A stretch of DNA of 64,000 nucleotides, from NCBI GenBank assembly GCA_964199315.1, contig OZ116703.1, positions 14,942,001 through 15,006,000 of the forward strand, given 5' to 3'. Made by a program: the position numbers and the translations under genes. Under the pieces are notes generated by a model. The model did no database searches and had not been told where the DNA came from. It was given only the letters and a program-made list of their open reading frames with translations. This stretch comes from Orbicella franksi (taxonomy: Eukaryota). Of this stretch, positions 4,500-23,822 are shown piece after piece (within the stretch, counting starts at the first letter, position 1; every line of letters starts with the position of its first letter).

Positions 4500-5867
4500 A
4501 TGCTGCTCATAAACGCCGTGAAAGGTGCACGAACGACGCAAGTTAAAATGCTCATAAAAGTTGGAATAAACGTCAATGAAGTAGACGAAAATGGACTTAC
4601 AGGTCTTCTTCACTGCTGCTTTCTTCAAGATGCTCGAGCAAGGATGAAAATTCTGAGATGTTTGATTGCAGCAGGTGCTGATCTCAACAAAAAGGACATT
4701 TATGGACGTACAGTTCTCAGCTGGGCTTGTCTTAGGGGAAGAGTTGAAATGGTTAGATATTTGCTGAACGACCTTCTTTGCATTGATCTCCGAGTGGATG
4801 TCACAGACAAAGAAGGAAACAATGCGCTACTTCTTTCTGTGATGTCTGGCAACTTTCACATTGTGAAAATGATGGTGGAGGTTTTAAGAGACACAGCGCT
4901 TGCTAGTGAGATTAATAAAGCTAACAACGATGGTATGCGGCCTTTAATAGCTGCGTTTTTACGAGGAGATAAACTCTGCGCGCAATTTCTCATAAAGCAA
5001 GCAGGATCTTCAGTGTCGAGTGTCCTTAAGTACCGCAGGGCCCTTCAAAACGGATCTCTTGAGTTTTTTACATGTTCATCGCTTTTGTTTGACTCTCCAC
5101 ACGGTAATTTCCATATTGCTGGAAATGAGCAAACAAGCCAACGTTTTGTTCAATCCACAGAAGACGACATTTTTGGGTTTCTGTTTGCAAAGGATGAAGA
5201 CATGTCCGACGCGCAGACGAGCAAATCCCAAGAAATAAAGCTGGACGACAATAACAATAATCTGGCGCAAAAACATCTTCTGTTGTCAAGAAGATCTGGA
5301 ATAAGAAATCAAGGAAATGTTCTATCATTTCAACCTCAACGACCTCCTTCAGCAGAAACAATTTCAGACATCTCCCAGATAAACACTTTTAGTTCTCCCG
5401 CGGACAACACTTCAAGATCGGCAAATATCACGCGGGAAGTGTCCGATTCGCAGAGCGCTGGTTCGTCGTCACGAACATCCGTTCAAAAGCTGCTGATCCT
5501 GTACGCAGAACAGATTTCACCCTCCTACAGACAAGGCTTACCCATACGTAGATACACGCCCACCCAGCCCGATATCTTTAATGAATCTAGCAGAGACATT
5601 GACTCCAGACGCTCTAGTTTGCTTACGGGGAACGAATCCGACCGAAAACTGCAAGCGTTTGCGGACTCCTTGGCAGGACCTTCACCGGGACTTCTTGGTG
5701 AATCCCTTATGGATCAGCAGCTTCGTATGAAATATGCTCGCAATTCTAGAGCCGCCAGTATGCAAGTTCCAAGGTTACCGGCCCTTTCCGTGGGGCGCGG
5801 GAGAGTCAAAAGAACAAGATCATCCACTATCATGTCGGTTAACAAAAACTACACGAACTCTAACTAA
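4500..5867 (+). CDS. Intronless ankyrin-repeat protein, ANKRD63/ANKRD34-like (paralog 1), 455 aa
   Basis: About five N-terminal ankyrin repeats ([32 protein letters not shown]) and a Ser/Arg-rich disordered tail. Architecture resembles ANKRD63. Confidence 0.85.
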
Positions 5868-6859
5868 ATGATAACGAGTAATAAAATAAACAGTGATCAC
5901 TTTTAATTTGAAACAAGCCTTTGTAGCCTCTCTCTAAGTTGTTATTGGATAAGTCTTCGAAATCAGCTCTATTCAGCTGGTTATCACCCATCGCAGCCAG
6001 AGGAAGCTACTGGAAGGTCTCACCTATTCTGTATTTTTTTTTTTTTTTTTTACCTTTAAAATTTTTTGGAAATTTTCAGGCTATATATTATCTTTACCAG
6101 CGCTCTTCCTCTACTCGGTGCTCGCAATCTTAAACCGACAAACTGGTTACTTTTCTGTTGCTACCTTACTGATTTTGTGTAAACACTCCTTTATTCCGTG
6201 TATATTTTATCGTGTGTTGCGTTAGGATTTTGCATGGTCGTCTATTTCGTTTTCAGTTTCGGGTACCGTCAAATTTTATTTGGTTTTCAGTAGCGTGATC
6301 GAAACAGTTTCGTTTTTGCGGAGTTTGTTATTCTCTCTTCACAGAAAGTTAAGTTACGTTCAATGCAGACTACAGTGAATACCGTGCATTTTTTCGTCGC
6401 TCATGTTGTCTTTGTGAATTAGCGTGTTTGCTGGCATAGTCGGCATAGCTTCTTTCCTAGCTAACGCTAGTGTTGGTTCTAGTTAATGATTTCTGCCGTT
6501 CAGTCTTCACACTGAAAACTTAGCATAAGGTGAATCAACGTAATCAGGTCTAGCTGACTCACAGGTGACATTTACCACCCCAAACCAAACCCTCTTTAAT
6601 TAATAATTAATAATTAATAACGGAGGCTTTCTCGATAATTTCCGCTCACTGGTTGACAGGAAACACGCAACACTTGGCTTGAAAAGTACGTGAGCCAGCG
6701 GGTGGTTAAATGTGAAATAACTTTTTCTGTTTCGATACCCGTCTTCGGTTCCAGTGCATACCCTCCTTAAAAATAAAGCTTACAAGTAACCGAATATGAC
6801 GTGACACGTCATGACGTCACAACTTCCACTTAGCCATTCTGGTTGATCCATGGGTCTCG

Positions 6860-7552
6860 CATCCTTGGAGAGGGGAATGAGGAAAGGGTCCAGCATCTTT
6901 TTTACAACAAATCTGTCGTTCATTAACTTCATATTCCAGTCGTTTAAGCTCTTTAGCCCTGATATTCGTTGACACAGGTCTTTGAAGTTTTCTTGTACAC
7001 GGCCTGTCGTGGCAGTGGCAAATGATCTTTCACTACAGAGCGAAGGGTTCTTTGTTTCGGTTTAGGAGTATCCGTCGTGAGTTCTTTTCGGCATATTCAG
7101 CACAGGTAACGTGCCAAAAATCTTGGGTGTTTTTTCGTCATTTTCTCTGAATGAACTGCAGAGGAAACAAGGTAATTTAAGTGAAGAAATACTGAAGAAG
7201 ATCTGGAGCTAGCTTGCCTAAGAATGTTTCAAATGTTTATGTGTTATGCACTACGTCTGAGACAGATCACCGCAAATTCGCAATGTATTTAACCAGAATT
7301 TGTTTTATTTTACTGCTTACATGTTTCAATATCTTCTGGATGAAAGTGTTTCTCGCGTGTAAACACCTTGTCGTTTTCTACTTGTCTCTTGAAGTCGCGA
7401 TCAACTTCTCTTGTCTTCGTAATTTCGCCGAGCCAATCTTCCCTCCATTTCTTGTGGTCCTCGTCTTTTGCCTTCGGTAACTTCCATATTCCTACTTCTT
7501 TGGTCCTTCTACTTGCGCTACAGCCAAACATAGGACAATTATCTCCTGGCGT
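6860..7552 (-). pseudogene. Decayed THAP-domain gene of an internally deleted DNA transposon
   Basis: Start codon mutated (ACG CCA GGA GAT AAT TGT). Reads [10 protein letters not shown]...KWREDWL...VFTREKHF, a THAP C2CH finger with the third Cys changed to Arg. GT-AG intron at 7156-7320. Exon 2 (..GTLPVLNMPKR..) carries several frameshifts. Confidence 0.75.
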
Positions 7553-8469
7553 AACGATACTCGATCAATTAACAGCAAATTTAACAGCCAAAACCAGAAT
7601 TTTTGATTCGAACTTCAATTTCTACGAGACTCCGGACGCCGTCTTCGCATTTCTGTTGTGCACGGTCGCGATCGCGTGACCAAGCAAAAACCTAAACAAA
7701 GAGATCGTCCTCTGAAGTTTGCCAGGTTTCATAACCATTCCCCTCCACTAACTATGGCTACATACGTAGCCTAGTCGGGTGACGAGGCGGTCAAATAGGC
7801 GAAAACGATGCGAACGAAGTTGACACCCTCTCGCTCGTTCTTGCAAACCTTTTTCCCCTCGAACTGGTTTGCCCGTTTGACGTCCTCCTGACCAACTGCC
7901 CCTGGGTGAATCTCGGAATCTGTTGGGGTAATTCAGTTTATGAATTGAAGCTTTTACAGAAAAGGATAAACGTTCCTCAGCTGAGGATTTGAGTGTGAGC
8001 TTACATGAAGTTCAGCTACTCCCACGAATAACGTAAAATTTCAATATCTTTAATTTCCTGAACACAACAACTAACAAGGCTCGATTAACAGCCGCTGTTC
8101 GGGAAAGGAGCCCGCGCAAGCCTACAGCTAACCAGTAATCAGTTATAACTGTTGTCTCTTTTTGATCTCTTTCACCTTTCCTGGCCTCTTGTAACAACCG
8201 CAAAATGAATACTAGCGACCTAAGCAAAGGCATAAGCTTATGAGGAAACCTTCGACATAACAAACCAGCTCCGTCTCTCAAATACAAGGCAACAAAATGG
8301 TGAAATAACCGATTTTCATTGACTGATCTACAGTGTTTGGTCATTATATTGGTAACTACAAACGTTTCAATGTTGTTATTGTTATTAGTTTTCTCCAGCC
8401 ATAGATGATGACCTTTTTCTCGTTTGGCTATAAACGTTCATGACGGCTCTTCAGAGCCAGTGCTAGATG

Positions 8470-8650
8470 CAGTATCATACATTACCGTACAGTATCATAC
8501 ATTACCGTACAGTATCATACATCACCGTACAGTATCATACATTACCGTACAGTATCATACATTACCGTACAGTATCATGCATTACCGTACAGCATCATAC
8601 ATTACCGTACAGTATCATACATTATCGTACAATATCATACATCACCGTAC
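8470..8650. repeat. Minisatellite, 9 x 20 bp (CAGTATCATACATTACCGTA)
   Basis: Nine head-to-tail units counted directly, with only a few substitutions and no spacers. Confidence 0.97.
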
Positions 8651-9083
8651 CCAAATTCGCAACTAGCCAATCAGAATCGAAGCCGTGAATACTGTCATAA
8701 AGTCCTACGATATCAAGTCACTAAGGTCGTGTTCTATTGGGGTCAACCATTTCAGTCGCAACCGCTTTGGGTTGATACGGTTAAAGTTTCTCAATAGAAC
8801 ACTATTCCAACCGTTTTCGCTTGAAACGCGGTAACTCCTGGAAAAAGTCCTTACGCAAGCTACAATCACACAACATAATCACGCAAATGCTTTTTCAACC
8901 GTTTCAACCTGGTTTCAGGTCAGTTGAAAAAGTTGATCAACCAAACCAACCGAAAATGGTTTTTCCCCAATAGAACACGGAAAATTCTAACCAACCAGAA
9001 ACGGTTGATCCCAATAGGACACGACCTAACTGTCACTGATATGGCTGCGATATCATGGTCACTTGGCCGAATTTGGGTACGGT
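8644..9083. mobile_element. Outer MITE-like element with 16-bp inverted ends, interrupted by the 8725-9026 MITE
   Basis: ACCGTACCCAAATTCG (8644-8659) and CGAATTTGGGTACGGT (9068-9083) form a perfect inverted repeat. Confidence 0.65.
8725..9026. mobile_element. PIF/Harbinger (Tourist-like) MITE, 302 bp
   Basis: 24-bp TIR GGTCGTGT(T/C)CTATTGGG(G/A)TCAACC, flanked on both sides by TAA (8722-8724, 9027-9029), the typical Harbinger TSD. Many internal CAACC/CGGTT motifs. Confidence 0.85.
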
Positions 9084-9594
9084 AAATACCTGATCGTATC
9101 TTTTTTGTATGCTTCGGCGGTATATCAGTATCGTGTGGTCTCGCCGTGGCTATTTTGGCTTGACTACCTTAAGAAAAAAAAAACCATGGCTAGACCAAAC
9201 TCGCCTGATTTGCCGCCGAACCGTACCAAAAAGGTACGATTAGGTATAAGTATAATTCATGTAACATGACTGCAAGCAGACTTTGCTCGTCTTTGCTGGA
9301 AAGCGTGCAGCGCATGCGTCTTTTAGTCCAGTTCTCACTGCTGATAAAAAATCGCAGAATAACCGCGACCCGGGCTCAACTGTTTAAAGACATTCGCTCT
9401 AACCATCAGTTGCTTCTTTAGAAGTTTGGACCAATACGAGTCGATTGGGCTTGCCCCATCCTTATACCCCCAATCGTGTCCTCTCTTTAACCTGCTCGCG
9501 AGGACGCGCGATCACTGCAAGTTATTCTTACTTTTCCCCGCACGAAAAAGAGTGTGCACTTAACGCCAGATGCATCCTTACTCCTAACTGCTCG

Positions 9595-9794
9595 AATAGG
9601 CCCTTTGCCCGACCCGGTCACATGGTACAAAATCACACATGCTGGGACGCAAGTTGCACAGTGGGACTTCCAAAACAAAGACAGGTCAAGGTGGACTGGT
9701 AGGAGTTGCTTTGTTTTGGAAGTTCCACTGCGCAACTTGCGTCTCAGCATTGGTGATTTTGTACCATGTGACCGGGTCGTGCAAAGGGCCTATT
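9595..9794. mobile_element. Palindromic MITE with arms of about 90 bp
   Basis: AATAGGCCCTTTGCCCGACCCGGTCACATGGTACAAAATCAC... is inverted as ...GTGATTTTGTACCATGTGACCGGGTCGTGCAAAGGGCCTATT. Possible TA TSD. Confidence 0.85.
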
Positions 9795-9984: not shown

Positions 9985-12505
9985 TTAGTTGCCTCCTCTG
10001 AATACCTTTGCTACTTCCACCATCAGTCTCATAGTTTGTTCACAGCTTCTCTCTTCTCTCTCACGGTCCATTCTTGTCATTTGAAGTAAAAACTCCCTGT
10101 CTTTTCGATCGCTGTCCTCCATGTAATCTTTAAGAAATTGAAGTGGTTGACCTTTCTTGTCTTGCGCACCGCTATCGTTTGCACGTCTGCTATCTCGGTT
10201 CGATGCTGTCCCGTGGGTCTCTCCCATGCTGTTGTCATTGCTACTTACACCAGAGCCAAAACGCGAATCCCCACCGTGGGATGGAAGAGCCACACTGCCA
10301 CTATTCCCCCTAGAGTTATCATGGGCATTTGCCTGACTGCTTTTAAACACCTTTGCTACTTCCATCATCATTTTCATTGTTCGTTCAAAATTTCTGTCTT
10401 CCCTCTCACGGTCCATTTGTGTCATTTGCAGCAAGAATTCTCTATCCCGTCTGTCGCTTTCCTCCATGTAACCCCTTAGAAACCGAAGCGTGGACACCTC
10501 TTCATCTTCTGCTGGCGCTTTTCTCTTGTTCCTTTTTTTGGGTGGCTCTCTCCTCTGTGGTATTTCTCTCTGATCAGGCAAGGCCTGGCTGACTTCGCCT
10601 GTCAACCCTGTGGTGGTGTCTACGTTAAGCGCTGCACTTGTTGGAATATTAACAACAACCATCTCATCGCTGGCGTTGCTGTCTTCATTCTCTCCACTAG
10701 TTACCAACGCTCTTTCATTCTCTTGAGTTACCGCTGGACTAGCGTCGGTAACATCTAAGGAGCTGTTTCCAAAAGTCTTCCCGAGGACCTCATCGACTTC
10801 GTCAAAGTAGTCGCACGTTCGGTCATCGCCTCCAGATTCGAGGATGCGCTTTTTGGTCGTCTTGTAATCGAACACTATACTCTTCATCCGCCCTTTACAC
10901 TGCTGACCCGAACGGAACGTTTCAAAACCGCACTGCGCGAGTTTCTGATTCAGCAAACGCGCCACCACATCCCAGGCTTTTGCGTTCCTTTGCTGGCTGA
11001 TGTTTTGGTACTGCTCTCCCCAGAGCGCGATAAGAAAGCGCGTCTCGGCATCGGACCAATTTGGAGATCGTCCCGGTTTGACTGGCATGGCTGATATGAA
11101 CGAATCAGCACCTCTCGATGTGGACCCACCAGAAGTTAGGCCGTGTCCGTCACGTGAGATGCTCGTAAAGGCGCTGAAGCGGGATTCTGACGACTGTTGA
11201 GAGGATATTTGGGTACTGCCAGTGGGTGGGGCCACTGTGCTCCTCTCACGTGACGTTTCAGATTGGAAAACTAGGTTTGATCCGCCTTTGTCAGATCCCG
11301 AGGGAGACAGCATTGAGGCAGCGAACTGACTGTAATTTAATTTTGACAAAAACTGTTAATTCGACAGGATGGAAACAGGTGGACATAACTGAGAATTTTA
11401 AAAAGAAGCTGTGGTTTTTTTATGCTGTAAAAAAGAGAAAAACTAGTGAAAAAAGACTGTGCTTTGCATATTCTCTCAGTCTCTATCACACTTTCGTGAG
11501 AAAGGTTTCAGTTTATTCTCATCCTCCATCCACCATCCAGGAGCAGGCTATATTGGAAAAGTGACTTGTTGGGGATTCTCCTTCAGAATAGAGTTTCAAG
11601 TCGCTCGCCAGTTTCGGAGGCTCTGATTTACTTTCCGCGACCAGAGGGGGCTAGCGGGGGGTTGATAAGAAAAACCCCACCAATCCTACGTATGGAGTGA
11701 TCTCGACCCATGCAAGCAGAATTTTACTCGATTGCTTTATCATGTTCATTATTCCCGGTATATCTTTTTCAAATTTCAACCCTTCTACCGTAAGTATTGT
11801 GTATAAATGTATCAGGCATTTTCAGTCTGTCATCAAAGAGGGTAAATAGTGCCGAGCTACATTTGTTTACATCAAATCGCCGTAAATTTTATACAGGTAT
11901 ATTCCGAACAATTTTCGTCGCTGCAAGGTTAAAAATAACACTTTATACTTGTGTGAACGCAAGCTCTGTCTGTCAAATTAAAAGCGAGTTTCTTTCCTCT
12001 TAGAAAATAAAACAAGTTGCCGCGTTTTTACGGTAAAGAAAGTGAAAATCACGGAGAATCCAGGCGTCTTTGTGTTGCTCGCTGTTTAATATTTTTTTTG
12101 CAATTCGAACCCGCATAGAATGCGAATAGTCTTTGTCTGCACTTCAATCGCTCAATTTGGACTACTTTCAAAGACACGTTCTAAAACCATCACCAGCATG
12201 TAAATTCCTCCGAGAAAACGATAAGTGCACGAGTTCTACCGATAGCTTTCTAAAAACGCTTTCTAAACAAGTTCGGGGCGAACCCGATAATAAAACTCGA
12301 TGGAGACGGATGGAGTCGAAACCCATGTGGACGTGAACATAACGCAAGCGGTTTGGATCCGTTTGCAGGTTTTGTGGCTCAGTAAAAAGCTTGTTTAGGG
12401 AGATATCGAAACGCTTGAACTCATACCTAAAATAACATGTATTAGAGAGCTTTCTTACCTGAAGCTTTCAAGGTTTGCGAGCGGACTGCTATCTGGTTTA
12501 TCCAT
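9985..12505 (-). CDS. Myb/SANT-like (trihelix, MSANTD/NAIF1-type) DNA-binding protein, Harbinger ORF1-derived, 463 aa, two exons
   Basis: Exon 1 is 12505..12459 (caaacATGG, MDKPDSSPLANLESF, CAG|GTAAG donor). Exon 2 is 11329..9985 after an AAATTACAG acceptor, phase 2 matched. The ORF-track start at 11349 is a TTG. Trihelix motif NWSDAETRFLIALW...AWDVVA...RSGQQCKGRMKSI, an NLS-like KKRNKRK, and two C-terminal helical repeats. Confidence 0.88.
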
Positions 12506-12821
12506 GTTTGAACACAAGGGAAATCGATACCAGTCAAATGTACGACGCGAAAGTGAATAAGCCTTGTCAAAACTCGCGCGCTGATTGGTTTACGAACAAG
12601 ACACAAAGAATTAGCAATTCTAAACTGGTGTAGATTTACAAGCGTCGAGAACCAAAAGCGTCCACATCTAGCTGCGTCAGTTAGACTCGTTTCACTTTGA
12701 AATTCGCTTAGAAGACGCACACCGGACTAGCTTTGGAAAACCCATTCTCTACAGCAATAAGGGTTTCTTTTGGTTGGCGAACTCAGCTGACTTCGTGGGA
12801 TCGAAAGAGCTTGAACTCTTG
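12506..12821. promoter_or_regulatory. Putative bidirectional promoter shared by the SANT gene and the HARBI1-like gene
   Basis: Only about 320 bp lie between divergent ATGs. CCAAT box (CTGATTGG at about 12581), CGCGCG, TGCGTCA and raised CpG content. Function is inferred. Confidence 0.6.
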
Positions 12822-14120
12822 ATGAAAATGGAGTATCAAAGTGTTGTTGACACGAACGGGGCTCAATTCTTTCTTTATGCTTTAGCTGCCATTCAAGCTT
12901 CAAGGACAAATAATCACCGAGCAAAGCTCATTCGAAGATATCGCACACTCAAGAAGCGAAGGATTCGAACAATGACGGCGTTACTAGCATACATCGAACA
13001 ACAGAAGCGTATACCGAAATTACCGTCTGCTCCCGAAGCTGGTCCGCCGAAAAGAGTTTGGGTTTTGCAAAGGGATCAATTTATGTTCGAGGAGTTACTA
13101 GCCGGAAATCTTCCAGAGGAAACATGGCATCAAAATTTCCACGTTTCAAAGAAGACATTTTTTAAGATTTGCGACATAGTTCGCCATGAATTATCTAGGC
13201 AAGACACGAATATGCGACCCTCTGTGTCCTTGGAAAAAAGAGTTGCAGTCGCGTTAAATCGCCTTGCAACTGGGAGTTGTTACACTGCTTGTGGTGTAAG
13301 CTTCGGGCTCCCCAAATCTACGGCGAACGTTGTAAAAAATGAATTTTGTGATATTTTGAGAAGGAAAGCGGCCAGTTTTATCAAGTTTCCAAAGAGCGAC
13401 GACGAAGTACGAAAGGTTATTGGTGGGTTTGAAGACATCTCTGTTTTCCCTCAGGTGGTCGGTGCGTTAGATGGTACGCACATTAAAATCATAGCACCCA
13501 AAGAAAACAAGTACGACTTTTTAGGGAGAAAGGTGTTTTATAGTGTTCTCGTTCTGGGGGTGGCAGACAGCTACTGCAAGTTTATTCACGCAAGTGCAGG
13601 ATGCCCTGGTGCAGTGAGTCGCGCAGAAATGCTACGGAACAGTGCGTTACAGCGTGACATTCAAAATGGCGTTATCTTGAATACTCCAGGTCGTTTGATT
13701 GACGGCAATGAGGTGAAGCCCCTTATAGTCAGCAACTCTTCTTTTGACTTGAGTTCTTGGCTGATGACACCCTATGTACCAACACCAAATGTTACCCCTA
13801 GTGAGAGCAGTTTTAATGCTGCATTGAGCTCTGCAAGAGAAAAGATTGTACAAGCATTTGGCTTGTTGCGGGGCCGTTGGAGATGTCTTTTGGAAACACT
13901 CAAAGAGGATACCCTAAGGGTTCCCACCACTGTTATTGCATGTTGTGTTTTGCACAATCTGTGCATCGACCTCGGGGACAATGCACCCGTTGAGCCTGTT
14001 GTCACTCAGGATGACATGGAGCTTTTTGATGACGACAGTGATGACTGGTCAACTATGGAAGAAGGAGGCAAAGAGTTAAGAGAAAAAATAAGAAACTATT
14101 TAGACACATATGGGTATTAG
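12822..14120 (+). CDS. Harbinger transposase-derived protein (HARBI1/ALP1-like, DDE_Tnp_4 fold), probably nuclease-dead, about 430 aa
   Basis: Intronless ORF; first ATGs at 12822 and 12828 (track start 12774 is TTG). Family motifs FHVSKKTF, EKRVAVALNRLATG, FPQVVGALDGTHI, WLMTPY, AFGLLRGRWRCL and ACCVLHNLC are present. Catalytic-site changes are described in findings. Confidence 0.92.
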   Translation: MKMEYQSVVDTNGAQFFLYALAAIQASRTNNHRAKLIRRYRTLKKRRIRTMTALLAYIEQQKRIPKLPSAPEAGPPKRVWVLQRDQFMFEELLAGNLPEETWHQNFHVSKKTFFKICDIVRHELSRQDTNMRPSVSLEKRVAVALNRLATGSCYTACGVSFGLPKSTANVVKNEFCDILRRKAASFIKFPKSDDEVRKVIGGFEDISVFPQVVGALDGTHIKIIAPKENKYDFLGRKVFYSVLVLGVADSYCKFIHASAGCPGAVSRAEMLRNSALQRDIQNGVILNTPGRLIDGNEVKPLIVSNSSFDLSSWLMTPYVPTPNVTPSESSFNAALSSAREKIVQAFGLLRGRWRCLLETLKEDTLRVPTTVIACCVLHNLCIDLGDNAPVEPVVTQDDMELFDDDSDDWSTMEEGGKELREKIRNYLDTYGY

Positions 14121-16168
14121 TACACTGTCCATTTATGAACCTTTTCTTTGCCATCGAAATTTGAATCATTGTCAGATATAACTTGTAGCGTTACATGTAG
14201 CTCAGGATTAGTACTTCTTTAAGTTCTTGTAGTCCTGTTTGTGTTCTTCTTCTGTCATTCTAAGTAAGATACAAGCACAACTTGGAATACAGTTTTGTCA
14301 TGCAAATAAACAATTTTATAATATTTTCTGTAATATCCACAGTATCTAAAGTAGAGATACCAGGAAAAGATTTTTACTGATCTTTTATGAAGGATGTACT
14401 TCATATTTTCCTCGTATAGATTTTTTTGGGAATAACATGTTCACTTCTCCATTCAGTTCTCAGTACATTCTCCTGCCAGCTTTACAGACAGAAGTTTAAA
14501 AAATTGAAAATGCACCCTCACAAATTACAACAGTCTGTATACAATCATCTCAAGTTTAGTGTGGAAAATAGTTTGCTAGGTTCCTTGACTTTGCTGATTG
14601 TGATTCAGTGTTGTCATTAAGTTTTGATTCACCTGTGGCCTTGATCTTCACACTTGTAGCAAACTTGTTTCCTTTTGAGTTAATTGTATCAACTACAGGC
14701 ACCTTCAGCCATAACATCAAGGGCCCACCAAAGAGTCATCAAACACACTTAGCCATAGCAGCTGTTATGAATTACAGCCCTTACTGACTGACAGCCTTGT
14801 TCAATTCTAGAAATGAAATTCTTGAAGAGAATTTATGAGACATTGGGAACATTTCTCTCAGTGCTTTGTTTTTAAAATGACTGAACTTAATCTACACCTG
14901 GGTTACTGGACGAGTGAAATGTCTGAAGTTTTAACTTTGCTGGATTTTGGCTAGTGGTTCTTGTGATTGGCTTGTCCACAAGGCCATCTTGAAGATTTAA
15001 TTTTTTATGTCTCCAAACTTCTCTCCCCATCTCCTTTCCCCGCCCAGGCCCCTGTTGTATAACCTTGAAGACATAATTATATTAGCTGCATACATTTGCT
15101 GTTCAAAGATTTTCATGCAATCCTCTATTGAAGTTCAAGCTTTGAGTAAGCCTGAAGCTGCTACAGATACTCAGATTGGGAAAAGCAGACAAAGTAAAGA
15201 AGTAAGCATGCTGTGAGAAAGCTAACACAGAGTGTTGAATGAGTAGAAAGTATAACACTTTTACTTCTGCTTTAATAATAAGCTGGAAAAGCAAAATTTG
15301 AAACGAGACCTGTGAAATGAGATGGAATCTGCGAATTGACAGGATAAAAGTGGCCCTAAGCGTATACAAATGCGCTGTCAAAAACAGGAAAGTAGTACCA
15401 TTCTCAAAGAGAAAACAAAAATTGATTACTACACTTTGATCACTGGTAGAGTTACTTTGCTCCCCCCACCCTACTGTTGTAATGAAGAACAGCGCTTTGT
15501 CAATGTTTGTGTGACATTTCGCGTGGCGTTTTATTATTGATTTAATAGTTTAATATTACACTTTATCAAACATGATAACATTGATTGACATTGCAATTTG
15601 AGCAGCTCGATGCAGGAATCTGTTTTCAGTTAACGTATCGGTATGGATAGCTTCCCGTTTTAAAGGTTTTTACAGTTTAATTGGACTCTGGAATCCCGTC
15701 ACGAAGTGAGTCAGTTTTAAAGTTGGCTTTTTTCCGTAACAATTGTGTAATACCGCGTGGTTTACTCAGTGAAGTCTGTTCCTGTTTCTTGGTTGATACG
15801 ATGTATTAAGGCCCTTTATTTTCGGTTAGTTGCTGTTGTTTAAGTATGCCATTTGCTGTGTTTATTTCAGATCGAATAAAAATCTTGTAATTTATACGAT
15901 TCACGGGAATTCAGAGTTAGGGACATTTTGGCGGTTTTCGTCCGACGGACCACCCACCCCATTCCCCCCGGGCTTATATGGAGAGGGACCCGGCTTTTTT
16001 ATAACTGTTCGCAAGCACGGTGGTGTTTTGCTTCTTATAACGATTACCATATTTATCTTCGTCCAGCTTTTCTGCAGAGACTGTTGTCTAGAGACGTTCT
16101 TATGTTTCTTGCATTAATTTGATCGAGCGCAGTCAAACAAAGGAGAAGGAGAAACAATAATTACTACG

Positions 16169-16796
16169 GAGGGGGACATGGGGATTTGCGGTGTTGCGGT
16201 GTTGATGTTTTTTTTAATGCGGTGATGCGGTGAATAAAATCTCAACTTGCGGTGTTGCGGTGTTCTCAAACCCTACGGTGTGCGATGTTTGTGTTTTTCA
16301 CGATGCGGTGTTCGGTGAAATGAAATTGTTTGCGGTGCTGGGGTTTTTTTGATTTAGCTTTCTGAAACCTAAATTTGACCTAAATTTAGCATGTAAACTT
16401 CGTTAATCGAAACTAATTTATGACAAACACGTACCATTGAGGTTAATAATTTGTAAAAAAATACAGACCATCACTTTCTAGTCAATCTTCAATATGCTTC
16501 GGCTGCCAATCCGAAACTGTTTTCATTTATACGTAACTTGACAAGTAACTCGACCTCTGCCACCCGGAGCTCAGTGTGCGGTAGACACGTGGAGGAGCGA
16601 GGACAGAAACAACGCGTTTATTTTGTGGAAAATTGTTGAGGTATAAAAGTATTATTTTACGTGTAGACGAACGAATCATGGCGCTGAAAGTACGTGTTGC
16701 GGTGACGGTGTTTCGTTGACTTTTCTTGCGGTGATGCGGTGTTCGTTAATTTTTTTTCCGGTGTTGCGGTGTTTAGAACCCCCAGATGTCCCCCTC
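16169..16796. mobile_element. Non-autonomous DNA element with 11-bp TIR and 6-bp TSD, superfamily unassigned
   Basis: GAGGGGGACAT...ATGTCCCCCTC flanked by ACTACG on both sides (16163-16168, 16797-16802). Repeated GCGGTG(T/A)TGCGGTG motifs near both ends. Confidence 0.8.
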
Positions 16797-17113
16797 ACTA
16801 CGGAGTGAGATTGTGCTGCTCGACGTCTCCAGACATCCACAGTTGATTTTGTTGAAGAAGATGAAACATGACTGGCTTTCCATATATCTAGTGGGTAAGA
16901 CGGCAACAACATCACGACCACGCGGTAAATTGCCTCGAGAAAGACTTGGTTAACCTTTAGATAAACGTTGGAATAGATACTATTTCGAAATTGTTTCAAA
17001 AACAATTTCGACAATTTTCTACAAAGCTCAACGCGACAAATTGCCTGATCAGAGAGGACCCCTCCCTGATGTTCTCAATTGTCACAGTAGCAGGTGATCG
17101 GATCCAACCACAA

Positions 17114-18075: not shown

Positions 18076-19420
18076 ATGAGTTTCGTTGACGCGATTTTTT
18101 GTCTTTTCATTTGCAGCTTACTGTTTCACCCAGCCAGTAGCGTGACGAATGCATCGAACCAAGTTGCGTCCAACAAAACGCCAGTTGTTTCTCCGTCGAC
18201 CAAATGCCACAACGTGCACTTCAACAACTATTACTCAGGACCGCCAAACAAAGATATCAAGGCGCATCTCATCAAAATACAGAATCAACTAGCAGATGCA
18301 CAGAAAAAACTCGTTGCAATGACGGGGAACAAAACTTTTAAGCCAGGTAAGTGAACACTACGGATAAAATTCTTTCGCTTTCTCGTTGCTCGCTGTCATG
18401 TACTGAAATAACTCTATACTTTTGCAGTGAAGAAAAACTGTGCTGAGCTGTATAAATCTGGCAAAAGAATCAACGGTGTTTACACAATCGACCCCGATGA
18501 TTCAGGTGCCTTTGACGTCTTCTGCGACCAAACAACAGCCGGTGGAGGGTGGACGGTATTCCAGAAAAGATTGGATGGCTCCGTTGATTTCAGCACCCGC
18601 GGTTGGCCCGACTACAAGCGTGGTTTTGGTAATCTGAATGGTGAGTTTTGGCTGGGATTGGACAAAATTAACCGCCTGACGAAGGCAAAGAACAGACTGC
18701 GAGTGGATCTCGAAGATACACAAGGAAAGACTGCATACGCTGAGTACGACGTTTTTGCTGTTTCGAGTGAAAGAAGCAACTATGAACTCAGTCTTGGAAA
18801 ATAATCCGGTAGGCGTTTATGCAATAATTATATGTTTACATCGATTTAGATCAGTTTTTTCAAAGTAACAAAACCATCTAGTCTTCCTCTCAATGCCTTG
18901 TTTTGGGAAGGCAAGGATTCATAGACAACATGTACTCATTTCTACGAGTGGAAACTCCTTGGACATATAAATCAATCTGCTGAAGGTTTATCCAGGGCTT
19001 TCTGTATTGCCTAGTCTCCCTCGGCTTCACCGTTCGCCGAAAATAATCCAGGCTTACAGTTTTGCTTGTTCTTTTTCCCTCGTAGATGAAAAATAGTTTC
19101 CCCTATATATTCGTTGACTCAGTGCTGTCAGTTTTTGCACGCCTTTATTTTCAGGAACTACTGGTGATTCATTGGGCTATCATCGTAACTCACCGTTTAC
19201 ATCAAAAGATCGCGACAATGATAATTGCCCGGGAAACTGCGCTGTGGTAACTAAAGGAGCTTGGTGGTTCAACTGCTGTGCATATTCCAACCTGAATGGC
19301 TACTATTACCGTGGGCCTCACAAATCCGTCCACGACGGCGTCAACTGGCGTACCTGGAAGGGTGGAAGCTACTCCGCTAAGCGGACAGAGATGAAGATCA
19401 GGCCCGTTGACTTCAGTTAA
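18076..19420 (+). pseudogene. Secreted fibrinogen-related domain protein (ficolin/ryncolin/MFAP4-like), copy 1, with an in-frame premature stop
   Basis: Exons 18076-18346, 18428-18808 and 19155-19420. Signal peptide, short coiled coil and FReD motifs (VFCDQ, GGWTVFQKR, GEFWLGLD, FTSKDRDND, WWFNCC.SNLNG). TAA at 18802-18804 where copy 2 has TAT (Tyr). Confidence 0.85.
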
Positions 19421-21225
19421 AACTCGTTGGAGGCGTGCGTCAGTTTTAGTTTTCCGTACTAGATTAAAATATCGATAACTAGCTCCCCGATTCACTTTCC
19501 TACCTTAAATGTGATTATAACTTTTGTGGTTCTGTTCGAGATTATGTTGTACACGGTGTGGGTCAAACTTATGAAAGATGTTAGACATATTTTGTAGTAC
19601 TGTCTTCTACTTTTATATGGTGGATTTTTTTTGGTTGCTCAATTTGTAAACTGAAATGCAATTTGTTTTAGCGTGTATTGTGTTGGGCGGTTATAAACGT
19701 TTTAATATATAAAGCCGTGGTAGCCTTGTCTCCATTGATGCCCGATATTGTTTCGTTTATTTTTTTTTTCGTTTTTTTCTTTTGGTTTAAAAGAATTGTC
19801 TAAGGAATTTTGCTTGAACGCATTGAGAAATCCGCTCCAGACTTGCTACTGAGGTCAGTAAAACCAGTGTGTCACTTTGTTCACGGGACGATAAATTAAC
19901 TTCAATTAATTTTTCTTCCAACTCCTTCAGACTAAGAGAGAGCAATCATTTTCACCAAAGCAACTCGTAAGCTGTTGGTATGATTAACCCATGAAACGTT
20001 TGAGCAAAAAGTTAAAATAAAACTGTGGGAAAAGTTTCTTGTTCAAATTTATTTTTCTGGGACTGTATTTTGTGAGTCTTGGATCAATGCAGCCGTGCTA
20101 CAGGGAGAGTAAGGCATAATTTTCCTTCCAATGCCACCTCCCCCGTAGGTTTTTAAATTTAACTTTAAAAAAAATCACTTAGCCTGAGTAGTTGGTCTTC
20201 TAAGCTATGTTTCGGGGGCTTCAATACTATTTTACTTTTACCTCTCTGAGCGGGGTTTTACATCTAAAATGCCGTATTAGGTTAACGATTCCTATAATGA
20301 CAGGCATATGGGCTGGGAGCGGAGGGGGGCGAGGAACGCTTATGATTCGGGCAACGGTACTTGACAGAAAACATGCCAAACGATTTTACTTAAAACTCGT
20401 AAGGTACTATCTCTGACGTTTGACTTGCCTGAGCGGACTTTAAGTCACATGATATGAGGGGTCCAGGTATTCTGTTTAAGAAAAGCTATAAATGTCGGCT
20501 ACAAACGTGGAAATCCACGATATGGAATTTATTTCCATACCCAATTTCCCAACAGTGACAAAAGAATCAAAGTGAACGAAAACCAAGACAGACTGCCAAG
20601 ACTTTTGTTTTCATGATGGCTCTGAAAAGAACCAGTTTTTGAACGACGCAGCGAATATCCGTTTTTAAAAATTTTTCTTGAAGTTTTTTTGACGAGGAAA
20701 TAACTTTTTCTTGAGTTTCTGATTTACTAGGCTGTCGATCAAAGCCATGGAGTATGCGAGGTTTCAAAATAACAATTTCGGAGCTATAGCAGTTTTATTA
20801 GACTTGAGAACTGTGAACGTTTTTGTTTTTACCGCAATCTAAATACGTTTGTATCCCGATTTCAACACTCGCGCGTTCGGGCATGGTGTAATTTTTTCGG
20901 GCAAGAATTTTGACCACCGCCACCCCGCCCCCACCCAAGTCGGAAGGTGCCCGTGTGCCTATGGCTATAATATTTATAAAGGGGAAGAAATAAATGAAGT
21001 TCTGTCTCCTTCCTCCAAACTTTATCCCTGGCGTTTTCCGGAGCCAGTATTCTTCTTGGTGTTTACTATTTTCCATTATCTCCTTCACACTTAAAGTCAT
21101 TTAGCATGTCCGCGTAATGAAACCGCGCTTACTTTCTGATTTTAATACTTTTTCTCTAAACCAAACAAGTGTAAATGATTTCAGTCGTGTCAAGAGAATT
21201 TGATCATAGTCTCGTAGTCTTGCCT

Positions 21226-21400
21226 TGTTTAAGTCCAGTCTGTTCCCCCTGACACTTTTGATATCCTGTAAACAATGTTTACATCGCCCGACACGCTTGT
21301 TAACATCGTTGACGAGAGGAACAGCTCCCTCGTGCCGCTTATGTGTCTTCAATTCAAAAGTAAAAACTGTAACACACAGGCTTGTAGCGCGAGCAATAAC
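21226..21400 (-). pseudogene. Fragment of a duplicate of ankyrin paralog 2
   Basis: 21226-21305 aligns at roughly 80% with 25785-25865 (SGNVNIVKTISKVFRRNRLDVN region) with a 1-bp deletion. Weaker similarity extends to about 21400. Confidence 0.75.
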
Positions 21401-22390
21401 GAGGCCCTTTTTAGCTCTCATGAAGGTGGACAGAAATAATCAGAAATTTTTAGTAAACGACGACTACCTAATGACATACAAATGCACTGTAAAAGACACG
21501 GAGAGAACACCACGTGTTGTATATTGTAGCTTTTGAAAGAAAAAACAGAGATATTCTTCAGTCGATTACAAATCAATGCAAAGCCTTACCACTGAACATA
21601 GTCCAGTCCCTGAACACCCCGCGCTATATGGGGGTTGAACCCGGGCGCGCGAAAAAAAAAACCTGTGTGAGTTCAACCCCTAGAAAGGATGAGTTGGGGG
21701 ACAAAACTACACTCCCACCACCCGCCCCCCCCCCCTCCCCCACTTCAGTTTGCCGATACAAGGGTTATAAATGTTTGCCCTATATCAGTAATTGCCTCCT
21801 GCTTATTTTCTTTTCTCCGCCTAGCCTCGGTCTGGCTTTTCAGTAACTCTGGGTCCAGTTACTTGTTTCCTCCTCCAATATTACAGAGGCAAATACACAA
21901 AAGAAGGACAAAATTATAATGATCGGTCTAAGACGTTTCATTTGATTTTACTCGACATATCTTAACATTGACTCAGTACACGCATACTAATTTTAATGGG
22001 ATAATATTTTCCATTCACAATTTTTCTAGAAAAGCCCAAATTTTTCTGTGGCAAATATTTCCTTATTGTCACTAGGTATGCCGGTATCTTGGAATGGTAC
22101 AGGAATTACTCAGTTCCTGAATTATTTCTTTTTGCGACGTTTATGGTGAAAGGGTAGCCTAAAAATTATTCTGTCGATCATTTTGTGCCTTTTTGCAAAC
22201 AATATTTGGGAATTAGCAAAGAAAAACTTCCGTTCGATTGACAACAATTATTCAAGAATGACTCAATCTGTGAAACGCGAAAAAGCGGCTCGTATCCCGA
22301 CCAAGTAATCATTGTACGAGTTTGTTGAGCTTAGTTAGCTATCGATAACACATCCTCGCAGACTACACTGAGGTCACGTTTCAGCCGAGA

Positions 22391-23822
22391 ATGATTTTGA
22401 TTTACGCTTTTTTGTGTCTGTTCTGTTGTAGTTTACTGTTTCAGCCAGCAAGTAGCGTGACGAATGCATCGAACCAAGTTGCGTCCAACAAAACGCCAGT
22501 TTGTCCCCCGTCGACCAAATGCCACAACGTGCACTTCAACAACTATTACTCAGGACCACCAAACAAAGACATCAAGGCGCATCTCATCAAAATACAGAAT
22601 CAACTCGCAGATGTACAGAAAAAAATCGATGCAATGACCGGGAACAAAACTTTTAAGCCAGGTAAGTGAACACTACGGATAAAATTCTTTCGCTTTCTCG
22701 TTGCTCGCTGTCATGTACTGAAATAACTCTATACTTTTGCAGTGAAGAAAAACTGTGCTGAGCTGTATAAATCTGGCGAAAGAATCAACGGTGTTTACAC
22801 AATCGACCCCGATGATTCAGGTGCCTTTGACGTCTTCTGCGACCAAACAACAGCCGGTGGAGGGTGGACGGTATTCCAGAAAAGATTGGATGGCTCCGTT
22901 GATTTCAATCGTGGTTGGGCCGACTACAAGCGTGGCTTTGGTAATCTGAATGGCGAGTTTTGGCTGGGATTGGACAAAATTAACCGCCTGACGAAGGCAA
23001 AGAACAGACTGCGAGTGGATCTCGAAGATACACAAGGAAAGACTGCATACGCTGATTACGACATGTTCGCTGTTGCAAGTGAAAGAAATAACTATAAACT
23101 CAGTCTTGGAACATATTCTGGTAGGCGATGCAACCTGTTTGCTTAGCCGGTTTTAGATCAGTTTTTGTAAGCTGTAAATCCGCCAAGTTCTCTCTCCTCC
23201 AAAAGAAGAAAGCATCAATTTATACCGTCAGTTAATGTTCATTAAACTGAAACATGCATGCTTTGTTTTGGGAAGGTAAGGATTCACAAACATATTCCCA
23301 TTTTTACGTGTAGTGACTCACATAATCACCACGCGATTAAGTTCCGCTGATCTGCCACAAAAGTAGATGTAGGGCTTTCAGTGCTTTGCCTGATCCCCAC
23401 CCCACCCCCTGGTCACTGAGTTTTGTTCTCTCCTCTCCGAAAATGAAACGCAGTTTCCCCAAAGACCTCTAATCGTTCCCATGCAAGTCGAAACTTCCAG
23501 AAGGGCCGCGGTTCTCGTGCTCCAGCGCGTTAATCGCTGTGTTTTTTGTACGCCTTTATTTTCAGGTACTGCTGGTGATTCATTGGGCTATCATCGTAAC
23601 TCACCGTTTTCAACCAAAGATCGCGACAATGATAACAATAAGGGAAACTGCGCCACGGTATATAAAGGAGGCTGGTGGTTCAATTCGTGCGTAGTTGCCA
23701 GCCTCAATGGCTACTATTACAATGGGCCTCACAAATCCTACCACGATGGCGTCAACTGGCGTTATTGGAAGGGTGGAAGCTACTCTGCTAAGAGGGCAGA
23801 GATGAAGATCAGGCTCGCGTGA
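22391..23822 (+). CDS. Secreted fibrinogen-related domain protein, copy 2, intact, 301 aa
   Basis: Exons 22391-22661, 22743-23120 and 23566-23822 with GT-AG phase-1 junctions and a complete FReD. Confidence 0.92.

Follow-up and report, generated by a model that had tools for sequence, protein, structure and literature searches.

Harbinger transposition requires both of the proteins that the element encodes, a DDE nuclease and a Myb protein. The latter binds to the ends of the transposon and also interacts with the nuclease (PMC4671723), and in the case of PING the mutation of a single residue of the triad abolishes most transposition (PMC4671723). In Arabidopsis, the transposase derivative ALP1 reads D-G-A in place of DDE (PMC4671723) and acts in Polycomb repressive complex 2 (PRC2) together with ALP2 (PMC4671723; PMC7282668), and HDP1 and HDP2 are reported to act in a histone acetyltransferase (HAT) complex. 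Adjacent pairs of co-domesticated PIF genes have been described in insects, namely APLG/APM in Anopheles and LPLG2/LPM2 in Lepidoptera (Markova et al., 2022, PMC9710019). Here we describe a locus of the coral Orbicella franksi, in a stretch of 64,000 nucleotides that was analyzed at its full length and is called the window hereafter (NCBI GenBank assembly GCA_964199315.1, contig OZ116703.1, positions 14,942,001 to 15,006,000 of the forward strand), in which a gene derived from a Harbinger transposase adjoins a gene for a Myb/SANT-like protein. The former is, with high probability, a domesticated host gene whose product is catalytically disabled. Adjacent co-domesticated Harbinger pairs being already known from insects, the coral locus is a further, independent example. 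No report of Harbinger domestication in corals or other cnidarians was found in the literature, and the pair would, as far as the literature searched goes, be the first such case in Cnidaria; it is old and has both genes of the module together on a single putative promoter.

The initial annotation of the window dealt with a lone transposase gene. That gene is present as described, whereas the Myb/SANT partner next door, which is equally constrained, had been omitted. The transposase-derived gene is the following:

12822 to 14120, plus strand: transposase-derived Harbinger gene, a single-exon coding sequence (432 amino acids and the stop codon), very probably catalytically disabled; delimited by the open reading frame (ORF), Pfam, orthologues of 70-96% identity, selection (omega) and an AlphaFold2 model

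On the plus strand, the frame stays open between 12774 and 14120 without interruption and encodes 432 residues from its first ATG at 12822, in agreement with the clean ORF of about 430 codons noted initially; the NCBI entry for the protein of the window itself, which falls into the same 90% cluster, is likewise 432 residues long. Residues 216-379 match the Pfam family DDE_Tnp_4 (PIF/Harbinger) with an E-value of 1e-28 and a score of 100.4 bits against a cut-off of 24.8, the profile being covered in full (positions 1-158 of 158), and a weaker match to Plant_tran was obtained (E 1.8e-6). The structural motifs first recognized in the sequence, i.e., the helix-turn-helix (HTH) region and the motifs WLMTPY, AFG.L.GRWR and ACCVLHN, were all found again, as invariant or near-invariant alignment columns. 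A sequence search of the PDB with the ORF, at E-values up to 1, returned no solved relative. In the databases, the genes of this locus go by the names of “putative nuclease HARBI1” or “uncharacterized protein,” and several of the models are fused with neighboring genes, labels that the present analysis of the locus corrects.

The catalytic positions were examined in alignments of the ORF with 21 and then 91 relatives, as well as with the best 150 representatives of an exhaustive search, and residues were counted over a clade of 97 orthologous sequences from Acropora, Montipora, Porites, Pocillopora, Stylophora and other corals. The codons singled out at the outset (13470, 13620, 13734 and 13848) proved to be exact and correspond to D217, R267, N305 and V343, respectively. 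The acidic residues had then been taken together as the DDE site, which holds for the triad at positions 217, 305 and 343; in contrast, the His-Asp pair is an additional motif of the family that lies outside the triad. The positions concerned are as follows:

13470 to 13472, plus strand: D217, the first Asp of the former triad, which is kept (LDGTH; ID/LDG(S/T)H in relatives); from the alignment, on predicted strand 212-223
13617 to 13622, plus strand: S266-R267 in place of the His-Asp of the family (GSIHD to GAVSR); from the alignment
13734 to 13736, plus strand: N305, where the family has its second catalytic Asp (GDxxY, GDSAY in relatives, to SNSSF); from the alignment
13848 to 13850, plus strand: V343 in place of the catalytic Glu (RVVIEQAFG to REKIVQAFG); from the alignment, on predicted helix 326-352
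13839 to 13841, plus strand: E340, an invariant Glu on the same predicted helix as V343; from the clade alignment

Within the clade, position 217 is Asp in 95 sequences and Glu in the other two, position 305 is Asn in all 97, where every intact coral paralogue has Asp, and V, I or L stands at position 343. The residue at 267 differs among the orthologues (H, C, F or R), and this position therefore appears to be unconstrained. The orthologue clusters all show the pattern D / (S,T,G)x / N / (V,I). Across the protein as a whole, 192 of the 432 residues are invariant among 14 cluster representatives. The intact coral paralogues P0019-P0055, which are 41-48% identical to the ORF, retain D/HD/D/E with few single-residue departures, and 100 of the best 150 representatives, out of 1.84 billion proteins searched, keep D-D-E; among these 150 no sequence other than the query reads D-N-V. 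Judged by its sequence, the ORF is thus homologous to the DDE_Tnp_4 family yet is not an active transposase, because the triad has become D217/N305/V343 and the HD motif is lost. The protein can almost certainly not cut DNA, since two of the three metal-binding residues (N305 and V343) are gone together with that motif. An acidic triad at shifted positions is not restored in alignments with 50 to 150 relatives, the sole caveat being the invariant E340, which the initial annotation had not mentioned. D309 was considered as a compensating acidic residue and rejected, because the orthologues differ at this position (D, P, Q, N, K or S). Of the 150 representative Harbinger transposases nearest to the ORF (within P0227-P0375), about 35 are full-length proteins with substitutions at one or more positions of the triad, such as G-A-N or D-D-K, and may include other domesticated copies or decaying ones.

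The closest parallel to this pattern is found in ALP1 of Arabidopsis (Liang et al., 2015, PMC4671723), in which the first Asp alone is kept as well, D-G-A in that case compared with D-N-V in the coral protein. A co-domesticated Myb partner has been demonstrated for ALP1 and is proposed here for the coral protein. The two differ in that ALP1 has a separate, plant origin and that the ALP1 and ALP2 genes have not been described as neighbors; moreover, the function of ALP1 was established by genetics and by immunoprecipitation coupled to mass spectrometry, whereas the coral gene is known here from its sequence.

Both genes of the coral pair are under strong purifying selection. It was assessed with codon alignments of seven and then nine species, the Stylophora orthologue being left out on account of an assembly gap and a break of the frame. 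Pairwise Nei-Gojobori ratios of non-synonymous to synonymous divergence (dN/dS) range from 0.05 to 0.12 for the transposase-derived gene and from 0.05 to 0.11 for the Myb gene, with dS values from 0.26 to saturation. No ratio near 1 was thus obtained, and maximum-likelihood (ML) estimates of omega under the Goldman-Yang (GY) codon model are 0.116 for the transposase-derived gene (416 codons) and 0.135 for the Myb gene (376 codons). Fisher tests on synonymous versus non-synonymous differences gave p values from 1e-6 to 1e-49, those of the transposase-derived gene lying between 1e-12 and 1e-49. By region, the HTH and linker part of the transposase-derived protein is the most tightly constrained (dN/dS 0.02-0.07), followed by the former catalytic core (0.08-0.14), with looser N- and C-terminal tails. 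Both frames have remained open in at least nine species at saturated synonymous divergence. The suggestion of the initial annotation that selection acts for a non-catalytic host function is therefore supported, by this omega of 0.116 as by the substitutions shared by 97 of 97 sequences and by the synteny described below.

An AlphaFold2 model was built on an alignment of 51 sequences (mean predicted local distance difference test score, pLDDT, 88; predicted template modeling score, pTM, 0.78). It comprises a long N-terminal helix of 53 residues (11-63), a helical HTH region (about 99-206) and a β-sheet core, in which the first strand carries D217, N305 comes just after the strand 301-303, and the long helix 326-352 carries V343. 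In a VIA wide scan of the PDB, the best matches of the model were piggyBac (Z 9.3), Tn5 (Z 8.8), Tn4430 (Z 8.2) and ISCth4 (Z 7.5), and retroviral integrase cores ranked after the DDE transposases; residues 99-186 resemble HTH domains of the sigma-factor region-4 type with a Z of about 6. Foldseek comparisons with the PDB yielded weak matches (E of at least 0.01), all of them to RNase H-like transposases or integrases. Since DDE transposases rank at the top of the scan, the RNase H-like DDE transposase fold is preserved in the predicted structure, and the metal ligands are not.

A homology search with the transposase-derived protein returned P0001-P0018 at 70-100% identity, followed by a sharp fall to at most 48%. 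Among them are the orthologues of Pocillopora verrucosa (XP_058956228.2), Porites harrisoni (KAM7448577.1) and Acropora digitifera (XP_015753832.1), the last of which is auto-annotated as “putative nuclease HARBI1,” and those of A. muricata, A. cervicornis, Montipora capricornis and Stylophora pistillata. In the exhaustive search of 1.84 billion representatives, the clade was represented by a single sequence, at 81%, and the match ranked after it stood at 41%, with no intermediate relatives between these two values. In an ML tree, the D-N-V sequences are monophyletic (support of 100% in the Shimodaira-Hasegawa-like approximate likelihood-ratio test, SH-aLRT) on a long stem of 0.78, and their clade is nested among intact coral transposases, with P0019 as its sister (SH-aLRT 99%); within the clade, the complex corals (Acropora, Montipora and Porites) form a subclade at 100% support. 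JGI metagenome contigs were scanned with the sister transposase P0019 for the gene order of the closest mobile relative, and distant matches alone were obtained, at 26-32% identity.

The tree set contained sequences labeled HARBI1 or ALP1-like by their sources, with no verified human or mouse HARBI1 among them. Neither the alligator “HARBI1” nor the fish ALP1-like sequences, nor the insect HARBI1-like sequence that served as outgroup, fall within the D-N-V clade, which stands as a separate clade among coral transposases. Orthology with vertebrate HARBI1 was accordingly rejected, the nearest relatives in the tree being intact coral transposases. HARBI1 and NAIF1 of vertebrates resemble the coral genes as a Harbinger-derived gene pair, the transposase derivative of which reportedly binds the Myb-like derivative; in contrast, the coral gene is not an orthologue of HARBI1, several well-supported branches separating HARBI1 and HARBI1-like sequences from its clade. 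HARBI1 has retained its DDE triad, and its locus is separate from that of NAIF1.

Because the clade spans both lineages, with the complex corals grouping inside it, recruitment predates the split between complex and robust stony corals. That split is reported to date back at least 245 million years (10.1101/197830). An independent cnidarian domestication had been proposed at first, and its independence is borne out by the nesting among coral transposases; its range is narrowed to Scleractinia, as no members were found outside them in protein databases, and the gene pair appears, from the available sequences, to be restricted to this order.

Two observations concern individual orthologues. In Stylophora pistillata (L006, LSMT01000216.1, 8982-10489), only the C-terminal half of the gene has been assembled, the N-terminal half falling within a run of 843 undetermined nucleotides, and the frame is broken at about 9974; the NCBI model joins this C-terminal part to the next Fibrinogen_C gene under the name of “Angiopoietin-related protein 7.” The A. 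cervicornis protein KAK2557246.1 (P0173, 720 residues), which is named “Trafficking protein particle complex subunit 13,” belongs to the same 90% cluster as the transposase-derived protein and is probably a gene-model fusion involving TRAPPC13. In A. digitifera, TRAPPC13 lies about 7 kb downstream (L014, 18680-21281), with another gene in between.

The partner gene is encoded on the opposite strand, in the ORF 9985-11349, which matches the Myb/SANT-like domain Myb_DNA-bind_4 (PF13837) with an E-value of 2.5e-16. Its features and those of the region that it shares with the transposase-derived gene are the following:

9985 to 11329, minus strand: Myb exon 2 (coding sequence and stop codon), delimited by the ORF, Pfam, orthologues of 56-93% identity and omega; putative in-phase acceptor AG at 11331-11330
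11330 to 12458, minus strand: Myb intron of about 1.13 kb (GT...AG), unconserved in distant species
12459 to 12505, minus strand: coding part of Myb exon 1 (47 nt), with its ATG at 12505-12503 and a GT donor at 12458-12457; from the sequence and the homologous first exons of P. verrucosa and A. digitifera
12442 to 12652, no strand assigned: conserved block with Myb exon 1 and the core of a putative bidirectional promoter, with CCAAT near 12583; from the alignment across species

The ATG codons of the two genes are 316 bp apart, in a divergent (head-to-head) arrangement, and the Myb gene adjoins the transposase-derived gene in every locus that was read. The NCBI models of the Myb gene in P. verrucosa and A. 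digitifera reach to about 270-315 bp from the transposase ATG and end there in a short first coding exon, which reads MD(K/E)... and is closed by AG|GTAAGA. The block 12442-12652 is the sole non-ORF part that aligns in all species (81.5% in Pocillopora, 71% in Porites and 69% in Acropora); the Myb orthologues themselves are only 56-93% identical. The Myb protein carries a basic patch of the PKKRNKRK type. Its C-terminal part contains an internal duplication of about 48 residues (L(R/Q)FL..YME.SDR.DREFLLQMT.MDRERE...; window 10001-10158 and 10346-10488), which predates the coral radiation, since cross-matches between the copies are seen in every species compared.

An intact relative was available for comparison in L015, a contig of a coral assembly in ENA, where positions 5840-9275 form a complete element with terminal inverted repeats (TIRs) of 24 nt, 92% complementary and 3.4 kb apart, which enclose a transposase gene (P0024) and a Myb_DNA-bind_4 gene; it served as the positive control for the detection of TIRs, and its target-site duplication (TSD) could not be assigned unambiguously. 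The element has the same two types of genes as the window; its transposase shares 47% identity with the ORF, and between its Myb domain and that of the partner the identity is 43% (E 1e-25). From this Myb domain match it follows that both host genes stem from the same Harbinger lineage. The element differs from the window pair in that D/HD/D/E is kept, its genes are convergent, and TIRs are present.

Synteny was read in eight orthologue contigs with their flanks (L001, L003/L004, L007, L008, L009, L010, L012/L013 and L014). The order is Ank(+), Myb(-) and DDE(+) in all eight, including P. verrucosa CM071754.1 (L012/L013) and A. digitifera DF970740.1 (L014), and the arrangement spans complex (Acropora, Montipora, Porites) and robust (Pocillopora, Stylophora) corals. 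The anchors on either side are as follows:

4500 to 5867, plus strand: ankyrin-repeat host gene, the upstream synteny anchor; from Pfam Ank families and the presence of the same gene upstream in all orthologous loci
18076 to 23822, plus strand: two tandem Fibrinogen_C genes, the downstream anchor in robust corals; from Pfam, blastn and gene tables

Fibrinogen_C genes lie downstream in several, not all, of the loci, those of the robust-clade species among them. The neighborhood of conserved host genes that had been noted around the transposase gene is thus real, with Ank upstream in every locus and Fibrinogen_C in several, and syntenic orthologues exist in both coral groups. The gene pair shows none of the signs of an autonomous Harbinger element, i.e., TIRs, a 3-bp TSD and multiple copies. 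No inverted repeats bracket it in the window, in accordance with the first impression that TIRs were not visible; no inverted pair spans or flanks the module, its two outer flanks are connected by no inverted pair of more than 11 nt, and the TIR motif of the intact relative in L015 has no match near the locus. Dispersed near-identical copies were not encountered either, as each gene of the pair occurs once in the window and at one syntenic locus per assembly.

In their general layout, the insect pairs are much like this locus: they consist of adjacent transposase-derived and Myb/MADF-like genes that are single-copy, syntenic and under purifying selection (PMC9710019), and they lack TIRs and TSDs (PMC9710019), as the coral pair lacks TIRs. 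Their dN/dS is about 0.04 (PMC9710019), compared with an omega of 0.12-0.14 in the coral. The coral event is, in contrast, an independent one that took place in another phylum and is nested among coral Harbinger transposases; it is probably also older, as it predates a split reported to date back at least 245 million years, against about 100 million years for Anopheles (PMC9710019). Further differences are that the coral partner has Myb_DNA-bind_4 and not a clear MADF domain, and that the coral genes are arranged head-to-head, with about 316 bp of conserved sequence between them.

How such a pair might function can be proposed from these data. In the scheme that we favor, the transposase was immobilized and co-opted before the complex/robust split, with its fold core and HTH region remaining under selection. 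The transposase-derived and Myb/SANT proteins would form a two-protein complex, in which the binding of specific DNA sequences, as well as nuclear import, would be the task of the Myb/SANT protein with its PKKRNKRK-type patch. The dead transposase would then act as a non-catalytic scaffold that recruits or modulates the chromatin or transcription machinery. The scheme taken as a whole, two-protein complex and scaffold included, seems reasonably likely, at a level clearly below that of the domestication itself. A more specific version, in which the Myb subunit recognizes ancestral Harbinger subterminal repeats, so that scattered Harbinger-derived MITEs (miniature transposable elements with inverted repeats) serve as the binding sites of a scleractinian-specific regulator and its lineage-specific network, is speculative and rather improbable. 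If it is true, the network arose with stony corals, and the pair would rank as the first domesticated transposase system to have been described in Cnidaria, as well as the oldest known whole two-gene Harbinger module kept together on its own bidirectional promoter.

Several observations weigh against the favored scheme or parts of it. Adjacency and a similar divergence from the same transposon lineage speak for a single insertion, yet the genes of the one intact relative examined, in L015, are convergent (DDE then Myb) where those of the window are divergent. The pair may, on this evidence, not be an unrearranged single insertion; either the ancestral element might have been laid out differently or the locus might have been rearranged, and it is possible that two adjacent copies each left one gene, the Myb gene in one case and the transposase gene in the other. 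The invariant E340 (97 of 97) lies three residues before the lost Glu, and together with the retained D217 it may form a remodeled acidic site. No clade members were found outside stony corals in protein databases, the genomes of anemones and corallimorpharians not having been searched. A chromatin or regulatory role is proposed by analogy with ALP1/ALP2 in PRC2, HDP1/HDP2 in a HAT complex and HARBI1/NAIF1. As to expression, NCBI gene models exist for the orthologues, and a Logan contig with the exact protein (L011) follows positions 12639-15555 of the window collinearly, at 98.8% identity, and shows no splice. This contig was rejected as proof of a transcript, because it cannot tell DNA from RNA.

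Other explanations differ from the favored scheme mainly in the part that they assign to the Myb neighbor and to the former active site. The transposase-derived protein might act without this neighbor, adjacency being a historical leftover or the effect of a shared-promoter constraint, and find its partners through its HTH region, its N-terminal helix or its acidic tail. The strong constraint on its own HTH region (dN/dS 0.02-0.07) and the predicted 53-residue helix at positions 11-63 would suit such a protein, and direct contacts with other complexes are known from domesticated Harbinger transposases such as ALP1; we nevertheless consider it unlikely, as in all species examined the two genes have been retained jointly, in the same orientation, with omega values close to each other and a conserved promoter block in common, and as the two proteins are reported to interact in active Harbingers and in the pairs HARBI1/NAIF1, ALP1/ALP2 and HDP1/HDP2. 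The dead transposase might also be a host-encoded inhibitor of transposition that, with or without the Myb protein, exerts a dominant-negative effect on the transpososomes of intact Harbingers by way of their ends or their Myb proteins. Potential targets abound, since coral assemblies contain many intact D/HD/D/E relatives, including a complete element with TIRs, and constraint on the protein is strongest in its HTH region and its fold, as expected of a binder that does not cut. Cross-recognition is doubtful, however, with the nearest intact transposases at 41-48% and the Myb domains at 43% identity; moreover, a TIR-like target motif was not found near the locus, and constraint over more than 245 million years in spite of transposon turnover fits a host function better, all of which makes inhibition quite unlikely.

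A nuclease or recombinase with a remodeled site (D217, N305 and E340), used for a DNA transaction of the host, would account for the retention of D217 and for the invariance of E340 and N305 in 97 of 97 sequences, E340 being placed by the model one helical turn from the canonical position of the Glu. Nonetheless, Asn and Val remove two metal ligands, the HD motif is lost and position 267 varies freely, single triad mutations are sufficient to cripple the PING transposase (PMC4671723), and there are no TIR substrates at the locus; this explanation is very improbable. Finally, a decaying, immobile and functionless remnant that has remained intact by chance would lack TIRs and catalytic residues, as dead copies do and as the pair does. 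Its probability is close to nil, given that both frames are open in at least nine species, with omega values of 0.116 and 0.135 and Fisher p values down to 1e-49, and that synteny is maintained on both sides of the complex/robust split; these results on selection and synteny exclude a neutral relic.

As a domesticated gene pair, the locus represents an independent and ancient case of recruitment in a non-bilaterian animal, in keeping with the recurrent recruitment of Harbinger proteins for chromatin or regulatory functions, often with the Myb partner coming along. Both halves of the transposon lie side by side on a conserved divergent promoter region, which offers a clean system in which to study why this two-protein module has been co-opted repeatedly. 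Its strong constraint and apparent restriction to Scleractinia make the pair a candidate lineage-specific regulator in reef-building corals, and the candidate can be tested in Acropora, where gene editing of larvae is available.

A few further features of the region were recorded. The two Fibrinogen_C copies, at 18076-19413 and 22391-23822, each align with both copies in related species, and their duplication is thus common to these species. In L007, from the species whose orthologue is 87% identical, retrotransposon ORFs of the Pao/BEL type (Pao_retrotransp, DUF5641; 12655-16976) lie directly downstream of the transposase-derived gene, in the place that the Fibrinogen_C genes occupy in other species. 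Downstream of the Myb gene, about 190 bp from its stop codon, the window contains a palindromic insertion of about 194 bp (9598-9791), with arms of 86 nt that are 93% complementary and with the termini AGGCCC...GGGCCT; it is absent from the orthologous site of a 95%-identical species (L001, about 5921) and hence looks like a recent MITE-like insertion. Lastly, overlapping ORFs at 8424-8688 of the window encode a tandemly repeated peptide-like unit (...YITVQYHTLPYSIIHYRT...), a sign that the DNA between Ank and Myb contains a short tandem repeat.

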